A stretch of 61,662 nucleotides of DNA, taken from contig CBFFRP010000121.1 of the NCBI GenBank assembly GCA_965644295.1, forward strand, positions 1 to 61,662, written 5' to 3'. Both the position numbers and the translations under genes were made by a program. The notes under the pieces were generated by a model. That model worked only from the letters and a program-made list of their open reading frames with translations. It was not told the origin of the DNA and ran no database searches. The stretch is from Paraphysomonas bandaiensis (lineage: Eukaryota; Protista; Chrysophyceae). Shown one piece after another: positions 5,435 to 37,326 of the stretch; positions within the stretch are counted from its first letter, which is position 1, and every line of letters begins with the position of its first letter.

Positions 5435-7285
5435 CTACTCGGAATAATTTTTGCTATACCCTAGTCCACCTACTCCAGGATTCATAGCATTAGTAGGATC
5501 CATTTTCTTCCACCGCTCCTGTGTCTGTTGCGGCGCTGCGTACTCCGTGCCGTGTCCATGCTCAGCAGGAAGCATACCACCAACACTCTCAATCTCTTGT
5601 TTTATCTTGTCTTTGCACTCTGCTATGTTTGCCGAGGTACTAAAAGCAATATCTTCGTGAACAACGTTACATCCAAAATGAGCATATCGCATGCGTACAA
5701 GAGGCGCATTTCTTCCTGTAAGCCCCTGAAGAGGTGGACATGCTTCGTCGTTCTTGCGTAGCGCATAGTCGAGAGAGAGGCCTTGTGTACCTTCACCAAC
5801 ACACCACGTCCGAAACGCCGGTGCGGCAGCAAATCTAAAGTACGTCACCTTTCCGACTTCCTCGTCGCTACACATATATAACTTGGCCGTGGGATGGCGT
5901 TTACAAAATTCATTGAGTAGTTGCTCAGTCCTTTTCAGATTCCCTGTACCGAACTCTCCTAGATTTATGAGCAAATGGTGGTCGAACTGTTTACTAATTT
6001 CTCTAATTTTCGGCGGTAAAGAAGGCGGAAGGAGGTTATTTATGCAATACAGAAAATTGTCGGGTAAAGTATCGCAGAACGGTAGCGGCAGGCTTTCTAC
6101 CCAAATCTTTACGTTCCACAGCACCGATAAGCTTCCTCCTATTCCAAGCTTCTGAATAGCAAAGCAAAGGCCCCGCCCAGCTCGGTCCACCACATCCACT
6201 GTATCACGGTCCATATACTCACACGAGACCGGCAAATCTTCAGGACTAACCATGAGCACCAGCTTCTTAAGCGCTTGTGCTTGTTCCAAAGATTCACAGG
6301 CCACCCACAGTGTCCGTCGCTCCGTGGGCACAGGAAAAGTGTCATGTAGAGAGGCAAGAACCATTACCTTACCCTCACAACGACACGGGTCAATACCACG
6401 AAGATCAGCATTATACCTGGAAACGTCATCGTCTAGTTTACATACTTGGGAGGCGTACTGAGAGTCATGCGCCGAACCAAGAGAGTTGTGGTGCAATTCA
6501 GTTGAAGATACCTCACCAATGTTCAGTCTATGTAGTAATTCTTCCTCAGATTTCGCCTGTAAACCCAGCGTATTCACTATTTCTACAGTACCCTCTGAGG
6601 TAACGCGACACCATACAGCGCGCTCTGTATACGCAGGTCCTTTGCGAATCTGTGTTCCTCCTGACCCGAATGCTACTCCGGCAGCAACTGACGGGTTTAG
6701 GAATATAGACCCCAGGACCGAATGAGACTCTCTCCCCCGTGCTGCAGCAGCTTTAGATAAATCATATATTCCTGCTCCAGCAAGACAGAGCATCTGATCA
6801 CCCACTGGGTGAATAGAATCGATGCGAGACATATTCATCACAACGGTGGGACGGGCACATTCACTACGCGGTACAGATCCACCAGTGAGACCTGTATTCT
6901 TTCCTTGGGGAATAATAACCACATCAGCTTCCACACATGCACGTAGTGCATCCACTGCTTCTTTCAGACTCCCAGGACGACACACAGCCAGGGCATCACC
7001 CTTGCCTATCCGAGCCCCAGTAGTAAACATAGCTTGCTTATTATGCTGAGTAATAACATTGTTCTCACCCACAATACGTTTCAAAGTATCTGGTAACAAT
7101 GTTTGTGGGGCAGATAGAGATACACTAGAGTCGCAACATGCTTCACCGTCTATACATGACCTCGGCAACCCACTGGGTAACTCACGAGATGAACGACTCC
7201 GCTCTGTATTTACACCCCACGCATATCCCGCAGCAAGACATGATGTACCCAATAGAATATGCTTTCCTAGTCTAGAAGGAAACAT
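5435..7285 (-). CDS. dld: FAD/quinone-dependent D-lactate dehydrogenase, bacterial Dld type, with N-terminal targeting extension
   Basis: QGKNTGLTGGSVP, GRESHSVLGS, RKGPAYTE, RYNAD, EYMDRD, HFGCNVVHED, PAEHGHG, DPTNAMNPGVG parallel E. coli Dld motifs; single exon. Confidence 0.85.
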   Translation of the reverse strand: MFPSRLGKHILLGTSCLAAGYAWGVNTERSRSSRELPSGLPRSCIDGEACCDSSVSLSAPQTLLPDTLKRIVGENNVITQHNKQAMFTTGARIGKGDALAVCRPGSLKEAVDALRACVEADVVIIPQGKNTGLTGGSVPRSECARPTVVMNMSRIDSIHPVGDQMLCLAGAGIYDLSKAAAARGRESHSVLGSIFLNPSVAAGVAFGSGGTQIRKGPAYTERAVWCRVTSEGTVEIVNTLGLQAKSEEELLHRLNIGEVSSTELHHNSLGSAHDSQYASQVCKLDDDVSRYNADLRGIDPCRCEGKVMVLASLHDTFPVPTERRTLWVACESLEQAQALKKLVLMVSPEDLPVSCEYMDRDTVDVVDRAGRGLCFAIQKLGIGGSLSVLWNVKIWVESLPLPFCDTLPDNFLYCINNLLPPSLPPKIREISKQFDHHLLINLGEFGTGNLKRTEQLLNEFCKRHPTAKLYMCSDEEVGKVTYFRFAAAPAFRTWCVGEGTQGLSLDYALRKNDEACPPLQGLTGRNAPLVRMRYAHFGCNVVHEDIAFSTSANIAECKDKIKQEIESVGGMLPAEHGHGTEYAAPQQTQERWKKMDPTNAMNPGVGGLGYSKNYSE

Positions 7286-7885: not shown

Positions 7886-10808
7886 ATGGGTGTGCCTAAA
7901 TATTATCGTTGGCTAAGTGAGAGATATCCTCGTATCAATCAATTAATTGAAGATGATTCAGTATTACCTGAAATTGATCACATGTATTTTGATATGAATG
8001 GAATCATTCATTTGAGTTCACATTCAAATGATGATAACACTCTAGCTGCTCCTGTAACAGAAGAAGAAGTTTTTGAGAATATGAAATTATTTCTTGATCG
8101 TTGTATATCTAAAATGATTAAGCCTAAAGTATCTGTATATTTTGCGGTTGATGGTGTGGCCCCGCGTGCAAAATTAAATCAGCAACGTGGCCGTAGATTT
8201 CGTGCGGGGCGTATGAGGTATCATTATCTTAATTACTGCTAAGATGAGATCATGACTTATACGTGTAGGAATGACATCGTTAATTCCTCGATGAAGGAAT
8301 TGGATACCGACTATATTGATTCATTTGACTCTAACTGTATTACCCCTGGTACGGCCTTCATGTCTGCTATTGACAAGTACATGAAGCAGTACATTGCGGA
8401 TAGGTTGCGCGGTGATGACCCTGTGTGGAAGGGTTTGCAGGTAAATGCGTATAATTCCGTCTTGTTTGCTGTATGTTAGAGTGTGCTAGGTGATTTATAG
8501 TGGAAGCGATTCGCCGGGTGAAGGAGAGCACAAAATCATGCAGCACATTAGGCGAGCTCGTTCAAGGAAAGACTACATGGCGAATCAGCGCCACTGTGTA
8601 TATGGGCTGGATGCCGATCTCATCATGCTGGGATTGGCAACTCATGAGCCACATTTTACTATCCTACGGGAGGTTGTAGAGTTTCAGGCAAGCAAAGACA
8701 GCTCTTCTAACTCGACTTCAGGACAAGACACTGACAGGGATGCTTCGCCTGCCCCACCTGTGTTGTCAACTGCTCCTATGCAGCTATTGCATCTTTCTGT
8801 GCTTCGTGAGTACATTGAAGTGGAATTTGCAGACTTAGGCATGGATGTTCGTCTCGACAGAGAGAGACTCATAGACGACTTTATTTTTTTGACATTTTTG
8901 GTCGGGAATGACTTTATACCGCACCTTCCTTCACTGTATATTGGAGAGAATGCGTTTGATGTCATTTTTGATGCCTATAAACTTCTTCATTCTGCTGGAA
9001 ATATTGGATATATAGTAGAAAATGGCGAAATATCTGACTTTGACAGGCTTGAAAAGCTTTTCCGTATCATCGGGGAGCAAGAGGTGAATCTACTTCGGAA
9101 GAGGGACCAGAGGCAGAGGGCATTCCTGCGTGGGCAACGATCAGGTAGAATACGCGATCTAAATGAGTGCATTAAGCAACCAGATGAAATGCGAGCGGAT
9201 TGGGCCGAAGTCTCTGATGTAAGCTCTTCTGATTCGGGGGAGAGTGAAGAAATTAGCGACATTGAGGGACAAGAGGATCAAGATAGTGACAGTTTGGTGA
9301 CTGTAGTTGGGGCGGAGACGACTGACAAATCCATGGAGCTGAGCTTCACACGTCCTACATCCTCGTCCTATATGATAGATACCGGGAGCATCGTCAATTC
9401 GCAAAATATTAATGATATAGATCTGGGTGACGTCAGTAGTATTGATTACCGCGAGCACCATTACAAATTAAAGTTCGGGGTGATTCCTGGTGTGACTCCA
9501 GGTGCAGATGAGTTTCTTTCTCAGTTGACTGAAGAATACCTAAAAAGTCTTATGTGGTGTCTCGCGTACTATACAAAGGGATGTATAAGCTGGTCATGGT
9601 ATTATCCGTACTGCTATGGGCCTATGGTTATCGACATGACTGGTCTAGCTACGAAAGCACGAAACATTGACTTTGAACTCGGGCAACCGTTCCTTCCTTT
9701 TCAGCAGCTGTTAGGGTGTTTGCCCCCCACCTCTAAGAATTTGTTACCATCATCTTATGGGTGGATCATGACCAGCGATAACTCCCCACTCAGGGACCTC
9801 TATCCTGAGGATTTCGTTGAGGACCTGGATGGGAAATTCTTTCATTGGGAGGCAGTAGTAATTCTACCATTTATTGATGCCAAGAAACTTATGGAAGTTG
9901 AGAAAGAATATTGCAGTGCCGACTTGTTATCTCCAGATGAAAAGGAAAGGAATAGCTTTGGTAATGCTGGCCTCTTTTCCGCAACTGTATCTCGCCGTGG
10001 CGAACGCATAGTAAAGCGAGTAGAAATCGAGAATGATTTCAACCCTTGTCAACCCTTTGCCAGTGAGCTCCTACCAGGAACACGCATACCTTATCATGGT
10101 TTTCCAAGTCTACGTGGTCTACCCATAAAATACACTGCTATGAAAATGCTACAGTATACATACGGTTACGGTATGCGTTATAAGACGCTGGTCCTGGGTA
10201 TTAATAACAGTCCATGTACAATCGGGCGGAAACATCCGAGTCAGCTGGTGGGGAGACGGGTCTTCGTGAACTACCCTCTCATGCACGAAGCTAAAGTGAT
10301 TGCTGTGAGCACAAAGTCAAGTTACTATATTGGCAAAGAGGCAGAGACAAATTACGGAGATGGTGAGGCGGGAGCACCACTCCCAGCGGTGCAACAGGTA
10401 CATCACAGTAAACAGGAGATAAAAGACTGGGTCCATAAGTCCGCGCTAGCAGAGCAATCACACATGAAGGGGTCAGGTGTCGTGGGTTCGTCCGGTATGG
10501 CTATTGGACGAATTAGAACTAGGCTTATTGTGGCCCCTGTAGTTGGATCTGTAAGAAATCCTGTTACTGGGAAGATGGAAAAGGTATACGGGGATAAAGA
10601 GATTGAAGTTCCTCTTCAATTGGTCAGATGGAAGAATCCAGCCCATTTACATGGAGCGAATGACAACCCTTCCCGAAAAAAAATGTATAATTCTCGGTCA
10701 TACTGTACTTTTATTCCACGTTCCTTAAGAATGCAACAATATGAATATAGTTCTCCTTCTAGATTATTGAGTAGATCTGCTAAATTTGCTAGTCGTTTCG
10801 TAAAATAA
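7886..10808 (+). CDS. XRN1: 5'-3' exoribonuclease, XRN1/XRN family (exons ~7886-8217, 8269-8440, 8490-10808)
   Basis: MGVPKYYRWLSERYP, DMNGIIH, AVDGVAPRAKLNQQR, FDSNCITPGT, PGEGEHKIM, YGLDADLIMLGL, GNDFIPH; GT-AG introns. Subfamily assignment tentative. Confidence 0.88.
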
Positions 10809-24055: not shown

Positions 24056-24624
24056 TTAACCTCTTCGGGGTCGTTTCTTCTGCTGCTCCTCCACACTGTT
24101 AGACACACTCCTCTTAACCCCGGTAATCGTTTTCTCATGACGGCTGAAGATCTTCGTGGACAACGCCTTTGTAAAAATATCGGCCGCCATATCATCCGTA
24201 GATACATGAATCAACTTTGCTGTAGGAAATTTTCCATTAACATGTTCTCTTATCCAGTGATACTTGATGTCAATATGCTTCGACCTCTTATGGTACACTG
24301 GATTCTCTGAAAGATCCTTTGCACTCTTACTATCCATAAAGAATGGAGTCGGCTTTGCTACCAAGAGTCCGAGCTCCTTGAACACCCCCCGAAGCCACAC
24401 CAGTTCTTGCAAAGCCGCATACTCCGCCATATACTCAGATTCCATGCTCGAAATCGCAACTGTGGTCTGAAGCTTGGACTGCCAGGCCAAAGCGCCCGCA
24501 CATAAAAGCACGATGTATCCCGTTGTGGACCGCCTAGTCATCCTATCACCAGCCCAGTCTGAATCACTGAATACATGTAAATCAAACTCACTCCCACTGA
24601 ATCTGATTCCCTTATCAACTGTAC
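24056..24624 (-). CDS. Copia pol C-terminal part (RNase H)
   Basis: FSDSDWAGD, RSTTGY, SSMESEY, DSKSA, RSKHIDIKYH, ADIFTKAL; rejoins the upstream ORF in frame (YLRGTVDKG) when the Gypsy and one TSD are removed. Confidence 0.95.
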
Positions 24625-25631
24625 TATAACAACACCCGGTTTGATAACCAGGGTGTTGGCTCGTAAACAATAAAACTACAACAACACCTACACTGAACCA
24701 ACAAGCACAGTAATAACGGTATTATTATTAAAACACTTTTTTCCAAGTTTAGACCTAAACTCAGTTAGTGACTCCCGCGAAGAGTCACCGCGCAATGGTA
24801 TACCGCTGGTACCCAAGATCACTAGCACCAAGCTTTGGTCTAACTTAAAACAAGTGATAAACACCATAGAAGCACATATGCACACACACACACTCCTAAC
24901 ATGGTGCAACACACGTGGTGTCATCACACCACCACAGGTTGCGCAACTCTTCAATCAAAACTGAAAAATACACAGCAACCTGACAGGGAGTGACTCACCA
25001 GCATATGCCTAGAGTACACCGTATACTACGTATCTATACCCTACCAGAGACTGAAAACCCCATAATCCAGGAAATACATAAATACGGTACGTATAGTACG
25101 TATAGTACGCACACCACATTTGCAATCGAACCCCAATAAGCCTTGCATGAACACTCGTGCACCTCAAGTGTATAATAGCGACTTCTCTCCTTTGATGGTC
25201 ACATGTACTTGCCCCCCTATAGGGTAGTACGGGTAATACATGTATGTATTTATATGGAAGTATGTACTGCAACTGCTATACAGGAATACGGGCCCACATA
25301 ACTTTGATATAAATTTGCAGCAGGTTTCACATCAACCGAAGTCACCAGCAGCAGATCATAGTCGTACATCATCATCAGCAGATAAAAATTGGACATCATA
25401 CCCGAACGTTGGCTCAATATGTAGGTACACTGTGGTACATTACCAATGTCCAAATGGTGTTGCATAATATGTATCCTGAACACAATGAAGGTCCTAAAGC
25501 AATATATAGGGTCCTGATATAGGGTCCTAAACCAACATAGGGTCCTAAAAGTCAATGTAACCATGCATGTGACTCAATAGCGTGTTACTATAGCCACGTA
25601 GATAGGGCATGGGAAATGCCACGTGGTCACA
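24625..25631 (-). repeat. Gypsy 3' LTR
   Basis: Direct repeat of 32127-33133. Confidence 0.95.
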
Positions 25632-25816
25632 CTGCCTCCTCCCCCGTTTTGGTTGTCTACAGAATAGCATGCCTCCGGTATTCACAAATGCCAACGGGAC
25701 TAGGTGTTACGTAGCCGTCAAAACGAAAATCCCCGGAGAATTATAAGTTATATAATAATAATTTGATATGGAATGGAATTGAGAGAGCAATAAGAATAAT
25801 GTGTCCAGCGTGGAAC

Positions 25817-28800
25817 TTAATAAGACGCACGGACCTGAGGATATTTGTTGGCAAAATCCTCGTCCACGAGTACCATTGTGCTAGCATTCACCTCGGAATG
25901 AACAAAGCAATGCACTAGGTAATTATCATAACGGTAGGTACGGAGAGTGAGAAGATCCTTCACCGATAAAACTCGCTTAGAGCTCTTGTGATACCAGTGT
26001 GTGAACTGGATAGGAGCTACATAAGTAATGAGATGAGAATCTGGTAATTCCAACTCATCGTACCAAGCATCACCATAAATTCGCAAATCAACATAGGCTA
26101 GATCACCAGGTTGAAACTGAGTGATCGGTTGCCGGCGGAAATCCGCGATGTATTTCTTTGCATAGTCAGCAGTATAAATAAGATGGTAAAGATATCGTTT
26201 TCGAGAACAGAATTCAGCATAAGGAACGGAATCAAAAATATCCTTGCTGTAAGGGACTTCTCGGACATCTCCATCTTGAAAACGCACAGTGAAAACCATG
26301 GTAGATCGAACCTCTCTATCACCACGGTAGTAAAGGATTTCATCAATAACATGTTGATCCTGATCCCGTAAAGCCATTTTATAAGCAGCATCAGAATCTC
26401 CCGGAAACAATTTAACATCACTCACGGAAACACGAACCACTTGCCCAGTGGCGAGATGTTGACAGTCTACGTCATTCTTGTACTGGGACTTGACTGAGAA
26501 AGGTCCCATATACCGGTGAGACATCTTGGGATGAACCTTTGCCCCTTTGTCGAATAAGACAAAATCTCCCGGTTGATACCTATTCTGTCTATCGGGATGC
26601 ACACCTGTTCCTGCCCTTTCCGTGGCTAACTTTTGCTGATAAGCTTTGGAAGCCTCTCGGAGTTGGGCTAACTGATCATTAAGCGCAGTGAGTCTAGCAT
26701 GCGCCCGATCTGGAAGATCTTTGATATCCATGTTCAAATAGTCAAGATCCTTTGAGCCAAACGTCAACTCAAAAGGCGAAAATCCTGTTTCCGAAGACAC
26801 TTCAGAATTTAGAAGATATTGAACACTTGCTAACCAACTAGGGTCCTCAAAGATGTCTTTTCGTTCCTCCCGTTCACTGTAATCATAGACCAGAGCACGT
26901 AGATGTCGAACTACTTCTCCAATAATTCTTTCACAACCATTTGCATGGCGATTGGCGATACTAAAAGTGTGCCGAACACCCATGTACTCCGTCAACTGTT
27001 TGAACAAATCTGAAGTCAAATCCGGTCCTTGATCCGAGATTATTAGATCTGTGTGACCGTAATGACTCCAGTATTTCCATATAGTATTTGCAAGATTAAG
27101 AGCCGTCACACCTTTGACAGGTTCAAGGTACACAAACTTGGTGAAAAGATTGACCACCACGTTGATATGTGTATATCCCTCTGCACCGTGAGGTGTGATC
27201 TCAACAGCATCTATACCAATCGCGCTACGAGCATTTGGGGGCTTGAGATTTCGTACGATCGGAATAAGAGCCTCCTTCATAGCCAACCTCGTTTTCACAC
27301 AATTTGGGCACTTAGAGATATAATCCTCAACAACCTTGTAAGGAATATTATGACCCGGGAACTCTTTGTTTAAGCGTATCCAGGTAGCCCTTCCCCCCAT
27401 GTGTCCAACTCGCGCGTTATGAACCTCACGCAACGCCGTCTCCGGTGATACATGAGATGTTGGAGGGTCCTCAATCTCTCGATCATCCGGGTTCATAAAG
27501 TTACCCAGAAAGTTAAAGTACTCATACTCATTACAGTCATCCCCCATGAAATAGGCGTCATCATATTCCTCCTCTGGGAATATTCCAGAGAGTACAGCGA
27601 CCTGATGCTCTCTAGATAACCAGTCCGCCAACCAATTCTTGGCACCAGATATATGACGAATGCTGAAGTTGAAAGACTGCAAGAATATCCTCCATCGTGT
27701 AATCTTTGGAACATCCGAAGATTCCATCCACAATAGATTGTTATGGTCGGTCTCAATTGTGAATTGCTTGCCTATTAAGTAATAAGCCAAGTGTTTAACA
27801 CTGTAGAAAATTCCATATGCCTCTTGCTCTATAGTTGACCACTTCTGAGCTTGGGCAGAAAACTTTTTGGAAATGAAAGCTATAGGCTGCCACTGTATGC
27901 TCCCATCCTCTAATATTTTCTTTTGCAATAACACTGAACCTATTCCCAACTCACTAGCGTCAGTACGCAATGTCCACTCAAGATTATAATCAGGATAAAA
28001 CAGCTCACAAGCGTCTTGTAGTCCAGCAATGAAACGACGATACTCTGCCTCGTAGTCATGCCGCCATGTGGACTTATCCCAATTGAAACTCGACTTTGTC
28101 ATGTCAGTCAAGTGAGCAACTAAGTCAGAGTATCTAGGCGTAAAACTAGAAAAGAATACCCCTTTACCCAGCAACGATCTGGCCTGTTTGGTGTTAGTAG
28201 GCATTGGAATCTTGCCGAGAGCCTCCTTCTTATCGGGATTAACCTCATATGACTTGTGACGGCAAACATATCCAAAGAAATCCACTTTTCTAAACCCCAA
28301 CCAGCTTTTTGGCATTTTAAGTTTCACATTCCTTTCAATACATCTGTCAATAATCTTTTCGAACTTCTCATAAGCATCCTTGGCATCATTAGCCAATATA
28401 AGCATGTTATCGAAAATGACTATGGCCCACTCAGAGAAATCATCGAATATTTCTCTCACAGTTTCCTGTAAAACTCCCGTGGCCGGAGCAATACCCTCTG
28501 GCATGAAATTAGGAGCAAATTGCCCCCAAGGCGTCTGAATGGATAGGCGCTCAGAAGTTTCATCATCTAATGGAATTTGATGAAAAGCATTTGTTAAATC
28601 TATATCCATGTATAGCGGAAAGTTGATAATCTTGTCCAACTCATGCTTAACATTAGGAATCGTATAATTTCCCACTTCCATGTGCTTGTTAATTTGCACA
28701 TAGTCACCACAAAAACGGATATATGGAGGAGTGGCTTTGGGAGCGACCACTAGGCATGAAGCCCAAGGAGAACGACTCTTTCGGTAGAAATAGCCACACA

Positions 28801-29800
28801 GTCGCCGAAACTCCTTCTCCGAAGCCTCCCACAGCTTAGGATTGATCGGGCGAGCCTTTGGTTTCATTCGGTCCGGGAGAGTGCTTTTCCATTTTAGAGA
28901 CAAAGGGTCCACACCTCTCACACCGCTCCATTGGTCAGGCACGAACACTTTTTCAGCCTTCGTTGACAACAATTCCATAATCTTAGTTTCACTTTTCATT
29001 TCATCACTGACATGAGTCTCTATCTGCTCATGATAGTCTTGGAGGGCTTCCTCCCTAGACTTTCCTAAGAATGTCAACGCATCCTTGAATTGAACCGGTA
29101 ACTCAGTTTCCTCATCCTCTGGGGCAATAGCATCACTCGCTCTTGACCATGGGTGCACACGGTCATCAGAGTCAACCGTGTCCCCTGCCAGAGATGACAA
29201 CACATTCGAATTTTCATTATCGGAGACACCCTCGATTTGAGTGTCATGTGCCTCACGCATAACAGCACACATGAAAGGATATAATTTTCCAGTCAGCGCA
29301 GGCAACCCCAAAATAATATCATTACTCGTCATATCGATCACAAAGAATTCACCCGTATATTGATAGGTATGACTCTTCGGATCAGTCAGCACTAAATTTA
29401 ATCTGACTCCTTCATTGAGATCCTTCACCGTTCTACTATCCGCCAATACCACACGGTGTTTAGCTTTATAAAAACGGCTCGGTTCTAGTTTGTTCCGCAA
29501 TCTGTCCACCAAATCCCTCGACACATAATTGGCTGAGAGGGCTCCAGTGTCACACAATATTTTTACTAACTCCTCTATTCCAAATTTTCTATCTAAAGTA
29601 ATCCTTCCTATAGTGTGCGCTGAAGAGAAGCTCTTGGATGAAGGATAGCAGGCATACAGCTTAGCCTGATCCCCGATACAGACATTGGAGGAATTCGCAA
29701 ACTCATTAAGATCATTAGAATGCACTGAACATTCATCATTCTCATCCCGAGTCTTTGAATTGGAATCCTCCTTGTCTGTATCGTCACATCCACCGAACCA
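25817..29800 (-). CDS. pol: Gypsy Pol (protease, RT, RNase H, integrase, GPY/F, chromodomain-like)
   Basis: LCDTGA; SPWAS, RFCGDY, IDLTNAFHQI, IFDN; TDASELGIG, EQEAYG, TDHNNL; H-x6-H...CPNC, GIDAV, ISDQG, ERII; YMGPF; HVIDEILYYRG. The frame is open up to the TGA at 29801-29803. Confidence 0.93.
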   Translation of the reverse strand, partial: WFGGCDDTDKEDSNSKTRDENDECSVHSNDLNEFANSSNVCIGDQAKLYACYPSSKSFSSAHTIGRITLDRKFGIEELVKILCDTGALSANYVSRDLVDRLRNKLEPSRFYKAKHRVVLADSRTVKDLNEGVRLNLVLTDPKSHTYQYTGEFFVIDMTSNDIILGLPALTGKLYPFMCAVMREAHDTQIEGVSDNENSNVLSSLAGDTVDSDDRVHPWSRASDAIAPEDEETELPVQFKDALTFLGKSREEALQDYHEQIETHVSDEMKSETKIMELLSTKAEKVFVPDQWSGVRGVDPLSLKWKSTLPDRMKPKARPINPKLWEASEKEFRRLCGYFYRKSRSPWASCLVVAPKATPPYIRFCGDYVQINKHMEVGNYTIPNVKHELDKIINFPLYMDIDLTNAFHQIPLDDETSERLSIQTPWGQFAPNFMPEGIAPATGVLQETVREIFDDFSEWAIVIFDNMLILANDAKDAYEKFEKIIDRCIERNVKLKMPKSWLGFRKVDFFGYVCRHKSYEVNPDKKEALGKIPMPTNTKQARSLLGKGVFFSSFTPRYSDLVAHLTDMTKSSFNWDKSTWRHDYEAEYRRFIAGLQDACELFYPDYNLEWTLRTDASELGIGSVLLQKKILEDGSIQWQPIAFISKKFSAQAQKWSTIEQEAYGIFYSVKHLAYYLIGKQFTIETDHNNLLWMESSDVPKITRWRIFLQSFNFSIRHISGAKNWLADWLSREHQVAVLSGIFPEEEYDDAYFMGDDCNEYEYFNFLGNFMNPDDREIEDPPTSHVSPETALREVHNARVGHMGGRATWIRLNKEFPGHNIPYKVVEDYISKCPNCVKTRLAMKEALIPIVRNLKPPNARSAIGIDAVEITPHGAEGYTHINVVVNLFTKFVYLEPVKGVTALNLANTIWKYWSHYGHTDLIISDQGPDLTSDLFKQLTEYMGVRHTFSIANRHANGCERIIGEVVRHLRALVYDYSEREERKDIFEDPSWLASVQYLLNSEVSSETGFSPFELTFGSKDLDYLNMDIKDLPDRAHARLTALNDQLAQLREASKAYQQKLATERAGTGVHPDRQNRYQPGDFVLFDKGAKVHPKMSHRYMGPFSVKSQYKNDVDCQHLATGQVVRVSVSDVKLFPGDSDAAYKMALRDQDQHVIDEILYYRGDREVRSTMVFTVRFQDGDVREVPYSKDIFDSVPYAEFCSRKRYLYHLIYTADYAKKYIADFRRQPITQFQPGDLAYVDLRIYGDAWYDELELPDSHLITYVAPIQFTHWYHKSSKRVLSVKDLLTLRTYRYDNYLVHCFVHSEVNASTMVLVDEDFANKYPQVRASY

Positions 29801-29879
29801 TCAAGGGCGGGAATCACCGAAGTGATCCCTCCTCAAGATGGTCGGTTGTTTGTCCCTCTGCTCCGAACTTCCCGCAGAC

Positions 29880-31610
29880 TTAAGATACGCATCGATCTTG
29901 TCCCGCATTTCGGACGCAGAATCCAACGAGACATTTCGCATTATGATTATAAGGACAGTCTGTTTTGTCGCACTTGCCATACATGATTTTTCTTAGACAC
30001 CCATACTTATCGGTCTTATTATTCTGAGCACCAGTTGGTCTAGCATGCATGGCTGACAGAGACCTATCAGAGTTAAAACGACGCTCCTCATCAACTGCTG
30101 CGTCATTACCCGACATTGGTTTCACATCTGTCATCATAGCGACTTGTTTATCGTCATGTACCTCCAGATTACTGGACCGCCAAGTCTCACTCGGAGCATC
30201 CCACAAATCATCATCATTGGGTACATACCCATCATTATCATCCCACTCATCGTTATAGTTTCCTCCAGACTCATCGTAAGTATCTAGATGTGACACTTGC
30301 GAAACCCTTGGTTTAGAATCAACACGACTGTTCAACGAAGGTTTGTTGGACTGTTGAGAGAATAGTTCCTTTCTCCTCTTAAGATAGTCCTCGTGCTTCT
30401 GTTGAAACATCGTAGTCGACTCCATAGGTAACTGTCGGTACGCGATGGTTACTTGATAATGATCCAAGAGTACAGCCGAATACTCTTTGAAAAATTCGCT
30501 CATAGAGTCAAATTTATTTGTCGACATGCACCCCAACACATACTTAACATAGGTCCCGTCATTCAAAGTCTTAAAGAGTCTTATCAATCCGTACTCTTTG
30601 TCATCGATACGAGGACACCATGTTTTGTTTGAGACCAACATGATAGACAACATTGTTTGGAACGACTGCATCAAGTTCAATTGCTGATGATAGAATGCCT
30701 CAAAAGTCACAGCATTTACATACTTCCAGTCCATAATTTGGATATGTTTCAATGAATCTCTGAGTTCATTATAAAATGCCACGCAATTGAACACTTTGGT
30801 CTCCTGAGCCACAATGAGAAGCAAATCCGAAACATCCATTTGTGCTAGCTGCGCATGTGTGATGCTGTACACATTCCGCAGATGTGCCTTCAAACTGGTT
30901 GAAAGTACCTTTTGAATTCGCACCTCAGTTTCTTCTTGCTCTTGAAACTCTAAGATGTCTTTGATCGCTTTCGCCACTTTACCCAACTTGAAGTCATTGA
31001 TGCGAACATGACACCTCCTTTCCTCTCTAGTTATGGTAACTGTTTTGGCACTAGCCACCTCAGAACTTTTCTTCAAATCCCTGAATAACTTGCCCGCTTT
31101 CTTGCCCTTGAAGATGTTATCCATGAGGGTAGGCACATCATTAGCACCATCACCATCAACATCGGGATTCGAACCATCGTCCTCCTTGTTGCTATTATCT
31201 TCCTGAGGAATCATGCGAAACTTAGCCATGTTTTCCAGAGTGGAATACCTCGGCTGACGTTTGTGTTTCGACGTGCGCTTGGTAACCTTTTGCCGCTGAT
31301 GTGAGCCCACAGAAGCCTGAGACTGACTGCTCTCACCATCCTCAACATTTTGTACTCTATTCTCCAATATTTGCATCCTGCTGCTGAGGTTAGACACTGC
31401 AGTAGCCACCTCTGTAAAAGACTGAGACATGGCACGAACTGTGTCCAAAATCTCCTGGTTTGGATTGATGTTTGGAGCAGAAGACTCCTGAACGACATCC
31501 TGCACACCTCCAGCAGCATCTTGTTTGGTTTCACCACTACCAGCGGCTTCCTGATCTTTCCCAGGAGTTTTCTTGCCGCCTCTCCTCGTTTTACCAGTCG
31601 GAGTAGACAT
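29880..31610 (-). CDS. gag: Gypsy Gag with C-terminal CCCH zinc finger
   Basis: Long ORF upstream of pol with a coiled coil and CLRKIMYGKCDKTDCPYNH; likely ATG at 31610 (MSTPTG); 3' end may extend to 29801 via a frame change. Confidence 0.85.
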   Translation of the reverse strand: MSTPTGKTRRGGKKTPGKDQEAAGSGETKQDAAGGVQDVVQESSAPNINPNQEILDTVRAMSQSFTEVATAVSNLSSRMQILENRVQNVEDGESSQSQASVGSHQRQKVTKRTSKHKRQPRYSTLENMAKFRMIPQEDNSNKEDDGSNPDVDGDGANDVPTLMDNIFKGKKAGKLFRDLKKSSEVASAKTVTITREERRCHVRINDFKLGKVAKAIKDILEFQEQEETEVRIQKVLSTSLKAHLRNVYSITHAQLAQMDVSDLLLIVAQETKVFNCVAFYNELRDSLKHIQIMDWKYVNAVTFEAFYHQQLNLMQSFQTMLSIMLVSNKTWCPRIDDKEYGLIRLFKTLNDGTYVKYVLGCMSTNKFDSMSEFFKEYSAVLLDHYQVTIAYRQLPMESTTMFQQKHEDYLKRRKELFSQQSNKPSLNSRVDSKPRVSQVSHLDTYDESGGNYNDEWDDNDGYVPNDDDLWDAPSETWRSSNLEVHDDKQVAMMTDVKPMSGNDAAVDEERRFNSDRSLSAMHARPTGAQNNKTDKYGCLRKIMYGKCDKTDCPYNHNAKCLVGFCVRNAGQDRCVS

Positions 31611-32126
31611 GGTTAATGAGAAGAACTTCCGCCTCAAAGACTATATCCACCAAACTTTTCCCTAACACACTGAGACAAGCAACCCTGGCAACTCCTAGAA
31701 CCACTGACCCAGAACTCAACAACACACCAAGACAAATCCCAAAGACAACCCTGCGTAAGAATCCAAAAACTCAACACTCAACACTCAACACTCAAAACCG
31801 TTGAACCCGTCGGATTTGTACAAGTGACAACAGTTAACACACAGGCGGTATCCACGGTCGATTGACTTCGAAAAGAACCGAATTTCCTCAGTCACCACAC
31901 TGTGAATCAAACAATCACCACTGAACAAAGAGCCTAGAGAACGACTACTGACAACTCACACCCAGAGAACAACAGACAACCAACAACAACCGGCAACCGA
32001 AGGCAACAGACAACAAGCCCAAAGAATCAAGCCCAAAGAAGCGTGTCGCAGTTAGTTTCTTATAAGAGTGTGAAACAACAGCGCAAAGACAGAAATTTCT
32101 GTACGAGCAGTAAAGTAAATATTTAC

Positions 32127-33133
32127 TATAACAACACCCGGTTTGATAACCAGGGTGTTGGCTCGTAAACAATAAAACTACAACAACACCTACACTGAAC
32201 CAACAAGCACAGTAATAACGGTATTATTATTAAAACACTTTTTTCCAAGTTTAGACCTAAACTCAGTTAGTGACTCCCGCGAAGAGTCACCGCGCAATGG
32301 TATACCGCTGGTACCCAAGATCACTAGCACCAAGCTTTGGTCTAACTTAAAACAAGTGATAAACACCATAGAAGCACATATGCACACACACACACTCCTA
32401 ACATGGTGCAACACACGTGGTGTCATCACACCACCACAGGTTGCGCAACTCTTCAATCAAAACTGAAAAATACACAGCAACCTGACAGGGAGTGACTCAC
32501 CAGCATATGCCTAGAGTACACCGTATACTACGTATCTATACCCTACCAGAGACTGAAAACCCCATAATCCAGGAAATACATAAATACGGTACGTATAGTA
32601 CGTATAGTACGCACACCACATTTGCAATCGAACCCCAATAAGCCTTGCATGAACACTCGTGCACCTCAAGTGTATAATAGCGACTTCTCTCCTTTGATGG
32701 TCACATGTACTTGCCCCCCTATAGGGTAGTACGGGTAATACATGTATGTATTTATATGGAAGTATGTACTGCAACTGCTATACAGGAATACGGGCCCACA
32801 TAACTTTGATATAAATTTGCAGCAGGTTTCACATCAACCGAAGTCACCAGCAGCAGATCATAGTCGTACATCATCATCAGCAGATAAAAATTGGACATCA
32901 TACCCGAACGTTGGCTCAATATGTAGGTACACTGTGGTACATTACCAATGTCCAAATGGTGTTGCATAATATGTATCCTGAACACAATGAAGGTCCTAAA
33001 GCAATATATAGGGTCCTGATATAGGGTCCTAAACCAACATAGGGTCCTAAAAGTCAATGTAACCATGCATGTGACTCAATAGCGTGTTACTATAGCCACG
33101 TAGATAGGGCATGGGAAATGCCACGTGGTCACA
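32127..33133 (-). repeat. Gypsy 5' LTR
   Basis: Direct repeat of 24625-25631. Confidence 0.95.
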
Positions 33134-36100
33134 GTACCACGTAAATATTTCAACAAATGAATAGCTAATCTGCAAGTCGCATATGTTGGAGAAGTACTAA
33201 ATCGAGCCAATAACCCCACAGCGTAAGCCAGATCAGGTCTAGTGTGAATCGCCAAATGCAACACCGCTCCAATAATTCCTCTATACGGAAATGATTCGAC
33301 CCACTGCTTCTGCTCCTCCGTCAGCTCACGTTGCTCTGCCAACAAATCCTGAACATTGGTAGGTAGTGGAGTCTCCTTATTCTTACTGCTCTTTCCCATA
33401 AACGAACTGAATTTCTTTACAATATTCTTGGCATATTCCGATTGATCTAACATGTACCAGTCCTCGCCTCTCGTGATTCTGATATTCAGAAACCGTTTGC
33501 ACACACCCAGATCGTGCATTTCAAACGTTTCGCAGAACCTACGTTTAACACTTTCTAAGTAGGTGAGATCAGCAGATGCAATGATAATATCATCAACATA
33601 TATCAGCAATAAGTGCAATTGACCATTACTCCATCGCATATACAAGCATGTATCTAAAATGCAAGCAGTAAAATGTAACGATTTGATGAACTTGTCAATA
33701 TGCTTGTTCCACTGCCTCGGTGATGACCGCAAACCATATAAGGCCTTGATCAATTGAAAACACCACCCCGCTGGCAACTCTTCATCAGGTGGAGGTGCCA
33801 TATAAACATCCTCTTCAAGATCGGCATAACAAAACGCTGATGATACGTCCAACTGATGTACATGCATATGAAACATAAAGGCAATTGCAAGCACCAGTCG
33901 AATGGTTATTCCTTTGACCACTGGAGCAAACGTGGACTGCTCCTCCTCCGTTTTTTCTTGTAGATTCCCTAATGCAACCAGCCGCGCCTTATACTTGACT
34001 ACATTCCCCAGAAGGTCTCTCTTCACCGTGTGAACATACTTTGCTCGCACCAACTTCACTCCTCGTGGAGTCCGCACAATCTTTAAGACACGTCTCTTCA
34101 GTAGTGAGGTCTTCTCCACCTTCCGAGCTTCTCTCCACTTCATGTACTGTGGAGATCTCTCTGCTTCAGCATAGGAGTCTGGTATCTTAAAGTCATCATG
34201 TTGAAACTCTGCATGTTTAAAGTTAACAGTGCATGCATCTGGCACCTCAACCATATTTATTTCTCCTAACACCGATGCGTTCGCCAACCTACGCTGTAGC
34301 CGTTTCCGCCGTACACGACCATCAGCATCTAGTTCAATAGGTCGTCTAGTAGATATATACGAACCCATACCTTGCTCATCCTGAGCCCGCAAATCTTGCG
34401 GTGTGGGAGGAGCCCCGCTCGCATCCCCAGACCCATGGTCTGTCGAGGTCTGCAACCTCACGACTGTCTGTTGACAGGTTGGGTCAGGACTCTCCTGGAA
34501 CCCTCCAGGTCTTCCCTGGTCCAGCTCCCTGGCTGGCGTAGTACTCAGGGCGTCCCCCTTTCCTATGTACCCGGTATTCCCGGGGGTTTCTGCAGTCATA
34601 CGCACCACGTCTTCGACGTGTATAGGCACCCGGTGCTCTATATGCTCGCGACCTGCAGTAACAAGTGAACGGTATGCTACAATCACACCCTTACGTTCTA
34701 CAACTCTTGTTGTCTTATACAGAAGTCCGTCCTCATCATCAATATGATACGTTCCTTCTAAGCTGACATAGTCGGATGCAAGCTTGGGTCTAGCGGCCTC
34801 CCGCACTCGAAGAGCATCAATCTCTGCGAAATACTTCTCTGATCGTGATGGCGTTGACTCATCAGTCAATATATGGACTGTAGTCACCACCTTGTTTGAT
34901 TCAGGAAGATATACATGGTATCCTACCTTCTCATCAGAGTAACCCATTAAATATCCAACTAGAGCCTTATCCTCCCAATCCTTTCGTCGATCCGCCTTCG
35001 GTGAAAGAACATAAGTTCGACACCCCCATACCCTAAGATATCTCAAATTTGGAGGCTCGCCCGTTAGAAACTCTATAGGAGACATATACCCTTTATCTGT
35101 TTTCGTTGGCAATCGAATCAAAATATATCTGGCTGCCATGTATGCATCCAGCCAAAATTGCAGTGGCAGTCCAGATTGGATTAGCATTGCAAGAGTCATC
35201 TCTCCAGCAGTTCTGAACTTCCTCTCCTCTATGGCATTCATTTCTGGAGAGTCTGTTGAGCTCCACGTATGTTGATAGCACTCCTGTGTCCTAAGATACT
35301 GACGCAGCTCCTCACTGATTAATTCTCCTGCACCATCGGCATGATAGTGCTCCATCTTGAGCTTGTACCTTCTAACATCTCCTCTAAATAGCTCTTTGAA
35401 GACTTCTAAGACCGCTTCCCCAGTTCTGTGGACTAAACCCGTCGCCCAGAACATTTTGCTGGCATGATGCGTTATCTTTAACACATACCTCTCACCTCCT
35501 CTAGCAGGACAATTTAAGTACACAGCGATATCTGCTGAAAAATTCGGTCTAACGGAATTCTCGTCCTTCGTTCGGAAGCTGACTCGGGTTATCTTAGACC
35601 TGGCACACACATCACACAAACACTGATTTTTGTGTACCTTGGCTGTGAGGTGTTTCCGTTTCAACCCTGTACCCATGATGAGCATCCTCTTATGTGCCTC
35701 CACTAACGCATGTTTGTTGAAGTGACCCGCTCTCCGATGCAGCAACTCCAGCTCGTCCTCACCAGTCCTATCGCTAAGATTTACTTCACAATTACTCGGT
35801 GTAGACACATCTGGAAGCTCCAACAGCTGCTGAGTTGGAACTGCAGTCATTCCATTCTTCATGGGTCCCTCCAGTACCAGTTCACCAGTATTACAGTCAT
35901 AAATTTGGATCCCATACCACACCGTGAATCGATAGCCCATTTCGTTCAGCTTACGTCCGGAGCACAGGCATCGATTGATCTGATCTGAAATTTCTATGTC
36001 TCTCCATGCTCCACGGGAACCCACACTTGTGATATGAATCTCTGATCCCTTCTTAGAGCCGTTTATCACCTTTGATGTATTCATATGAGTGTCAAGCATG

Positions 36101-37326
36101 GTCACATCATTCATCAAGAACATTGATGATGAACAGCAGGTGTCAATATATGTATAATGCATGTCATCATTTACACTACATATATTCGTTTCATGTATAT
36201 TGCATGACAATTTCATAACATCCTCGATCATATTTGCTTCATCTTCATCAGAGAAATCTGCTGGTTCTCCACGCCGTATATTCTCTACTGTCAGCAGCCT
36301 TTTGTCCGGCTTCCTACCATGATTCTTCCCTTTCTCTCCTCTTCTAGAATGCTTTTTCTTCGTCGTTGGACAATCAGCAGCAAGATGTTCCAGAGACTTG
36401 CAATTTCTGCATCCCGTGTATTCAGCACTTCCAGGACGCTGCCCTGATATCTCTCCATCCTTCTTCCTCTGCTTCCTCCTGCACTGTTCAGTTGAATGGC
36501 TATGAGGAATTCCTTCTTTCCTGCAATATCTACAGTTGCCCTTCTTACGCTTATCCCGTTCCGTTCGAGACCGTTTGCTCTTTTCAATGAAGTTCAGCTC
36601 CTCCACCTTCTTGCGTTTCCGCTCTAACGCAATCCTTCCAGGAATGGTATCATCATACCGTTCTATCTTCCTTGATAATGTTGCATAATCAACATCATCA
36701 GGCATCAAATACAAAGCAACATTCAGAGGAGCATATTCTTCATTCAACAGACCTTCTCGTAACCGTGTTATTTTTGAGAGCTCCGATATGTCCTGCTGCT
36801 GCTCCTGTAGCTCTTTCAGCAGTATTTCAAACCGTATTATATAGTCCTTCGCAGTCTCCTCCGGACGCATACGGAAAGAGCCATACTGAGTCAACAGCTC
36901 ACTGATCTTGTTTTGCTTCCCTCCAGCAAAGCACTTCTTCAACTCATCAATCATAATATGCGCCTTAAACCTGTTGCTTCCTCTTCCATCAGCCTTGAAC
37001 CCTTTATGTAGAAGATGGAATTTCTGAAGCGCCTTCGAAGATGATTGCACTGCCTCTCTGCAGTACGAATACGCTATGGCATTCGCCTTCCAGTACTTCT
37101 TCACAGCCTGTCTGTAAGACTTCTCCTCCATTAACGTGAGTGGCTGTTCCCCGAAGTCGCTCTCCTTCGGTGGTGGCTCCACAGCTACTTCACTTTGCTC
37201 TTTCCTCATGAGGAACGTTTCGAAGTCTTCAATCCATTGTTCAACATTGCTCTCATTAAACTGTGGCACTACTCCTCTATCCTCCTTCTCTCCTCCTCGC
37301 TCGCTACCATGTTGAGAAACGCTCAT
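33134..37326 (-). CDS. Copia Gag-Pol (Gag with zinc knuckles, protease, integrase, RT)
   Basis: CRNCKSLEHLAADC, YIDTCCS, LLHRRAGH...CDVC, HADGAGE, KYKARLVALG, QLDVSSAF, KALYGLRSSPRQW, IYVDDII, TRPDLAYAV. Confidence 0.96.
37299..37309 (-). promoter_or_regulatory. Copia primer-binding site (TGGTAGCGAGC), probably initiator tRNA-Met
   Basis: TGG immediately after the 5' LTR; TGGTAGCG as in the Ty1 tRNA-iMet PBS. Confidence 0.75.

Follow-up and report, generated by a model that had tools for sequence, protein, structure and literature searches.

An Asp-Asn motif in place of YxDD in the reverse transcriptase of a recently inserted Ty3/Gypsy element from Paraphysomonas bandaiensis

We analysed a 61,662-nt stretch of DNA from Paraphysomonas bandaiensis (contig CBFFRP010000121.1, hereafter the window), which carries a Gypsy-type long terminal repeat (LTR) retrotransposon on its minus strand at positions 24625-33133. 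The reverse transcriptase (RT) of this element has Ile-Phe-Asp-Asn (IFDN) where other RTs carry YxDD. The element is very probably an intact and very recent insert of a large, monophyletic and still-mobile Ty3/Gypsy lineage with a remodelled, fixed RT active site. What we observed is the motif, the place that it takes in the fold, the fact that it is fixed and under purifying selection, its co-occurrence with a Glu in motif B, and repeated recent insertion. Selection and the fresh insertions together support a real and apparently functional variant of the Ty3/Gypsy RT. Relatives of the lineage are abundant in marine metagenomes. We found no description of an IFDN or Asp-Asn RT motif in the literature searched, the coverage of which was incomplete. 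All coordinates below are positions in the window, and the features that bear on the motif are the following.

25817-29725, minus strand: pol open reading frame (ORF), 1302 aa as listed, in a frame open for 1327 codons, with the order protease (PR), RT, RNase H (RH), integrase (IN)
28046-28858, minus strand: RT domain, pol residues 290-560
28574-28603, minus strand: RT motif A, IDLTNAFHQI, pol residues 375-384, with D376 the catalytic residue
28466-28507, minus strand: RT motif B, FMPEGIAPATGVLQ, with the E410 codon at 28496-28498 in place of the F/Y/Q of other RTs
28406-28417, minus strand: RT motif C core, I437-F438-D439-N440, which replaces YxDD

The reverse complement of 28406-28417 is ATT TTC GAT AAC, which encodes I-F-D-N at pol residues 437-440, and the surrounding sequence reads WAIVIFDNMLIL. 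In HMMER alignments without gaps between motifs A and C, IFDN falls on YLDD of Ty3 RT (4ol8, E 5e-39) and on YVDD of cauliflower mosaic virus (CaMV) RT (8r0s). In an AlphaFold2 model of pol residues 290-560, made with an input of 69 clade sequences (mean predicted local distance difference test score, pLDDT, 94.5), F438-D439 forms the turn that joins strand 434-437 to strand 440-445. As modelled, this hairpin is the one that bears YxDD in known RTs. The top Foldseek matches of the model are the RTs of Ty3, of CaMV and of Moloney murine leukaemia virus (MMLV), with TM scores of 0.79-0.87, and 4ol8 and 8r0s come first. The motif is not an assembly error, as independent public contigs of runs X10 and X3, the latter a marine metagenome, span 28406-28417 with zero differences.

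The motif is fixed in the genome. The 62.5-Mb genome was searched in six frames, and 36 of 493 candidates were scored; these fall into subfamilies at 100, 99, 88, 85, 75 and 70% identity and are nearly all free of stops. Every locus with a readable RT frame (29/29) has both IFDN and IDLTNAFHQI. Between subfamilies, each codon of the motif has undergone synonymous change (ATT/ATA/ATC, TTC/TTT, GAT/GAC and AAC/AAT). The ratio of nonsynonymous to synonymous change (dN/dS, Nei-Gojobori) comes to 0.035-0.07 in pol and 0.01-0.016 in the RT, with synonymous sites saturated among the more distant subfamilies. The stops in one copy (L012) probably come from frameshifts; hypermutation as their source was ruled out by a balanced substitution spectrum.

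Recent movement is seen at several sites. LTR matches occur at least 40 times elsewhere in the genome, at 94-100% identity. At three separate insertions, namely the window copy, C258 and C546, 4-bp target-site duplications (TSDs) accompany LTR pairs that are 99.2-100% identical. The copies inspected outside the window are these.

Copy C258 (L031): TSD CAAT, LTR-pair identity 99.9%
Copy C546: TSD GGCC, LTR-pair identity 99.2%
Copy C69: no TSD, LTR-pair identity 97.7%

The LTR of the C258 copy ends in ...GTTACA (TG...CA), and those of the window copy and two others end in ...GTTATA (TG...TA).

The motif is also retained far beyond this genome, with x-aromatic-D-N kept in ~270 outside homologues. 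In a word-indexed search, all 120 metagenomic homologues listed (RT identity 55-100%) have [I/L/M][F/Y]DN. An exhaustive HMMER scan of 50%-cluster representatives gave 381 matches at E<=1e-30 and 15,538 at E<=1e-10. Among the best 150 of the 381, 148 carry h-[F/Y/H/W/M]-D-N, down to 40% identity; the other two are a fragment of 319 aa, which has IMDG, and a protein at 26% identity, which has a canonical YMDD. A search that started from a divergent member with IWDN (P0306) separated the clade (E<=1e-46, >=36% identity) from canonical Gypsy RTs (E>=1e-25, <=31%). Among the 83 RTs of a maximum-likelihood tree, the 72 DN sequences are split from the others by a long branch with a Shimodaira-Hasegawa-like approximate likelihood ratio test (SH-aLRT) value of 100, in a quick search that kept the motif columns and returned long-branch warnings. 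In a feature search of the ESM-Atlas, all clusters returned were generic Gypsy ones of animal and plant origin.

Runs of at least 15 studies contain near-identical contigs; these runs comprise organism-labelled data, marine metagenomes, and both poly(A) and random-primed metatranscriptomes. Contigs from RNA libraries span much of pol at >=99% identity and are compatible with transcription. Some polyproteins of the DN clade, 1800-2700 aa long, carry an extra domain: PF03372, PF01928 (CYTH) or PF00856 (SET). PF03372 is the endonuclease/exonuclease/phosphatase family, with the AP-endonuclease fold typical of LINEs. All of these proteins (P0309, P0338, P0341-P0348; P0328, P0330, P0332; P0346) retain PEG and either FDN or WDN.

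A preliminary description of the element, made from its sequence, had read both the Tyr and the second Asp of YxDD as replaced, and the codons together with the gap-free alignment to YLDD and YVDD bear this out. It held that the change was not a single post-insertion mutation, which agrees with its presence in all 29 readable copies, in subfamilies down to 70% identity and in the outside homologues. The checks that it proposed came out in the same direction: IFDN is fixed and under purifying selection, with synonymous codon variants and the low RT dN/dS, and the RT tree puts the DN sequences on one side of a fully supported branch. The two outcomes that it saw as damaging, sister copies with YxDD and an assembly error, were looked for, and neither was found among the 29 readable copies or in runs X10 and X3. 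Its suggestion of a natural, active lineage with a two-aspartate RT is supported by selection and by the recent insertions, and it is from these two that we infer enzymatic activity.

The Asn in motif C does not stand by itself. Among 241 aligned RTs of the clade, the residues of the active site are conserved as follows.

D376, catalytic Asp of motif A: 240/241, the remaining one a gap
D439, first Asp of motif C: 241/241
N440, second position of motif C: 240/241
E410, motif B, P-E-G: 240/241
D374, two residues before D376: D in 93%, else E or N

The lone RT without E410 is the same one that lacks N440. PEG occurs together with DN in all 27 tabulated clade RTs (>=36% identity to P0306), and a P[F/Y]G-type motif together with DD in all 11 outgroups (<=31% identity to P0306). 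No intermediates between these two states were seen among the 27 clade and 11 outgroup RTs. Glu was found at position 410 in 0/11 of the DD outgroups, which at the D374 position usually have Lys, Ser or Ala. The signature of the clade is h-[F/Y/W/H]-D-N in motif C, P-E-G in motif B and [D/E/N]-h-D-h-x-N-[A/S/G]-F-H-Q in motif A. As an Asp of motif C is lost and E410 and D374 are acidic, one carboxylate has been lost and one or two have been gained near the active site. The co-fixation of P-E-G in motif B with Asp-Asn in motif C, as read from these alignments, is newly reported here.

In the HMMER alignment, Ty3 and CaMV RT have Phe at the E410 position. We take the Glu of motif B to occupy the position of Q151 of HIV-1; retroviral RTs have Gln there (Q151 in HIV-1, Q190 in MMLV). 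By homology to HIV-1 RT, this position would form part of the wall of the pocket that takes the 3'-OH of an incoming dNTP.

These observations suggest how the enzyme may work. The RT most likely polymerises by the usual two-metal mechanism, in which the metal ligands would be D376 of motif A and D439, the first Asp of motif C, whose counterparts Ty3 and Ty1 cannot do without. The auxiliary part played by the second Asp, which involves no chelation, would fall to Asn440. E410 and D374, perhaps with other lineage-specific changes, would make the DN motif compatible with a full replication cycle; E410, and perhaps D374, may thus compensate for the lost carboxylate. We tentatively extend this to a wider reading, for which the case is more finely balanced and leans slightly the other way: the clade may be an ancient and abundant branch of LTR retrotransposons with a re-engineered RT, in which Asp became Asn, a new invariant Glu entered the dNTP pocket and an extra acidic residue appeared before the motif A Asp. 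Such a branch would represent a natural solution to the block that D-to-N imposes on transposition, and its RT may differ in metal preference, fidelity or processivity.

Several points weigh against an active, mobile DN lineage. The same D-to-N change is lethal for the transposition of Ty1 and Ty3, and activity here therefore requires compensation. In a genome scan with RVT_1, the DN-type elements scored 46-57 bits and matched only model positions 56-204. Other RT families are present, and those that are canonical by score reach 92-105 bits, their open frames being 1300-1900 codons long. Many retroelement families here thus look intact, given their high RVT_1 scores and long open frames, and RT could act in trans. 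Intermediates, if rare, could occur among the 231 of 381 representatives (E<=1e-30) beyond the best 150. The RNA-library contigs leave transcription unproven, because DNA carry-over is possible.

Two of these facts, the loss of Ty1 and Ty3 transposition on D-to-N and the presence in the same genome of intact elements with strong canonical RVT_1 matches, also favour the most serious rival. According to this rival, the RT is catalytically dead and the family non-autonomous, copied in trans by a canonical YxDD Gypsy element, with the RT kept for some role other than catalysis, such as particle assembly or scaffolding of RNase H. We consider this unlikely. The metal-binding Asp pair is 100% conserved across ~240 RTs, within pol, dN/dS shows the strongest constraint on the RT, and DN persists through a synonymously saturated clade, in many independent subfamilies and many samples. 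In addition, the nearest DD relative has only ~31% identity, and a helper would therefore need, over a long evolutionary time, to recognise RNA and primer signals to which it is unrelated.

Another way to explain the motif is that the alignment is out of register: IFDN would then not correspond to YxDD, and the real third carboxylate would be found close by in the sequence. The Pfam RVT_1 match in the window copy is weak (35.7 bits) and motif B is remodelled, with an Ala-Pro pair two positions off that of the outgroups, which would fit such an error. Nevertheless, it is very improbable, since the alignment to Ty3 and CaMV RT runs without gaps from motif A to motif C, F438-D439 sits at the turn of the predicted hairpin, and the palm region of the 241 RTs has no conserved DD and no invariant Asp besides D376 and D439. 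That the motif is an artefact, or else a mutation private to a single degenerate copy, has a negligible chance of being true; it is refuted by the 29 genomic copies, by independent runs without differences and by hundreds of homologues with the motif. A mobile lineage with a fixed and functional Asp-Asn RT thus remains the reading that we favour.

The remaining features of the element are listed here.

32127-33133, minus strand: 5' LTR, 1007 bp, which on the minus strand starts with TGTGACC and finishes with GTTATA; an exact repeat of 24625-25631
24625-25631, minus strand: 3' LTR, 100% identical to the 5' LTR
33134-33137, no strand: TSD GTAC on the 5' side, paired with 24621-24624
24621-24624, no strand: TSD GTAC on the 3' side, paired with 33134-33137
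32115-32126, minus strand: 12-nt palindrome GTAAATATTTAC, directly after the 5' LTR at the expected position of the primer-binding site
29880-31637, minus strand: gag-like ORF, 585 aa, with no Pfam match
29537-29554, minus strand: aspartic protease motif CDTGAL, pol residue 58
27671-27991, minus strand: RNase H domain (PF17917), RT_RNaseH at pol 579-685
26951-27439, minus strand: integrase zinc-binding domain and catalytic core (PF17921, PF00665), Integrase_H2C2 at pol 763-812 and rve at pol 838-925
25632-25645, minus strand: polypurine tract (PPT) GGGGGAGGAGGCAG, directly upstream of the 3' LTR
33138-37326, minus strand: upstream part of a Copia-type pol, with RVT_2, SH3_retrovirus and a canonical IYVDDIII
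24056-24620, minus strand: downstream RNase H part of the Copia pol, in the same frame after one GTAC is discounted

The window copy is structurally complete. Its pol ORF is free of stops and matches, in order, RVT_1 (359-486), RT_RNaseH, Integrase_H2C2 and rve; a chromodomain (PF00385) found no match in the 1302-aa pol (Pfam, E<=0.01). The LTR pair shows zero differences across 1007 bp, and the exact match reaches 1010 bp, as 3 bp of the TSD match internal sequence by chance. The preliminary description had thus been right about an intact Pol with motif A, LTRs without differences and a perfect TSD, here GTAC on either side. Each of the four inspected copies (the window copy, L031, L032 and L033) has the perfect palindrome GTAAATATTTAC, which lacks a TGG start, next to its 5' LTR. 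The 5' flank of the window copy, which is Copia sequence, also happens to hold AAATATTTAC.

The element sits within the Copia-type pol, the frame of which, by frame arithmetic only, runs on across the insertion when one GTAC is discounted. This continuity fits a clean and very recent integration, and the target Copia element was probably intact until the Gypsy element inserted. Nearer the start of the window, a minus-strand ORF at 1248-2294 matches DUF5906 (E 3.5e-14), followed by ordinary host genes for a D-lactate dehydrogenase-like protein (5435-7285) and an XRN 5'-3' exonuclease (8490-10808).

The gag stop lies at 29880-29882. The pol frame is shifted by one base and has an in-frame TGA ~80 nt further downstream (29780-29900, minus strand). 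A simple gag-pol frameshift was therefore rejected, as a single shift cannot join gag and pol while the pol frame keeps this TGA. Judging from these frames, gag-pol expression would need readthrough, splicing or re-initiation. As the pol open frame has the same length (1326-1329 codons) across all subfamilies, the gag-pol arrangement is conserved.

YxDD is the accepted signature of RTs, and annotation pipelines use it to call RTs 'intact'. As RVT_1 scores of the DN clade are weak (35-47 bits), its members are easily missed or labelled degenerate. Mutagenesis of HIV-1, Ty1 and Ty3 has left the role of the second Asp open: yeast elements with D-to-N polymerise and fail to transpose. A large, mobile lineage in which Asn is fixed and is accompanied by a Glu in motif B is a source of second-site solutions found by natural selection, and these can be swapped in and out of recombinant enzymes. 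Marine genomics is concerned too, as the elements of the lineage are numerous in the host and present in many marine metagenomes and metatranscriptomes, some with AP-type endonuclease, SET or CYTH domains.

The element has the hallmarks of Ty3/Gypsy: direct LTRs with a short TSD, the order PR-RT-RNase H-IN, and an RT that is nearest to those of Ty3 and CaMV by both sequence and fold. The YxDD box, which is a general RT hallmark rather than one specific to Ty3/Gypsy, is absent, with IFDN in its place. Among named Gypsy groups we compared GyDi, a diatom-specific Ty3/Gypsy cluster named in 2009, the catalytic motif of which went unremarked (Maumus et al. 2009, PMC2806351). GyDi elements have the typical PR-RT-RH-IN order, as does the element described here. 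The P. bandaiensis genome has at least 8 silicon-transporter genes (PF03842), and the relatives of the element come from marine samples.

A natural Asn at the second Asp of motif C is known from the RNA-dependent RNA polymerases (RdRps) of Mononegavirales (GDNQ) and Birnaviridae, in which the first Asp is essential; mutation of the second motif C position in RdRps alters activity or metal preference and does not abolish catalysis (PMC4634563). This is a mechanistic analogy only, as these are RNA polymerases of RNA viruses, from an unrelated lineage, and the substitution is not homologous.

Among RTs, the closest parallel in substitution is Ty1 D211N (Uzun and Gabriel; Pandey et al.), in which the second Asp of YXDD becomes Asn and the other two Asp are kept. 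This mutant retains polymerase activity, with kpol 223-fold down and a preference for Mn2+, and its transposition block is relieved by mutations in its RNase H domain that act as suppressors (PMC2148107), as the preliminary description had correctly stated for the Asn change itself. Unlike the RT described here, which is natural, ancient, under purifying selection and accompanied by further fixed changes in the active site, Ty1 D211N was made in the laboratory, in a Copia-type RT.

The closest relative with a known structure is Ty3 (Metaviridae; PDB 4ol8, 7q5b). It shares with our element the PR-RT-RH-IN order, LTRs, a short TSD and a PPT, and its motifs A to C have the same order and spacing; its RT is the best match in sequence and also in fold, with a TM score of 0.79. 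The two RTs differ in that Ty3 has YLDD and MPFG where the element has IFDN and MPEG, in the Asp two residues ahead of the catalytic Asp of motif A in the element, and in an overall RT identity of ~23%. In Ty3, D151 and D213 are required for Mg2+ binding, and D214N and D214E leave an active polymerase with lower processivity and are lethal for transposition (PMC5371799). The Asn that is engineered and lethal for transposition in Ty3 D214N is thus, in the P. bandaiensis element, the wild type of a mobile lineage.

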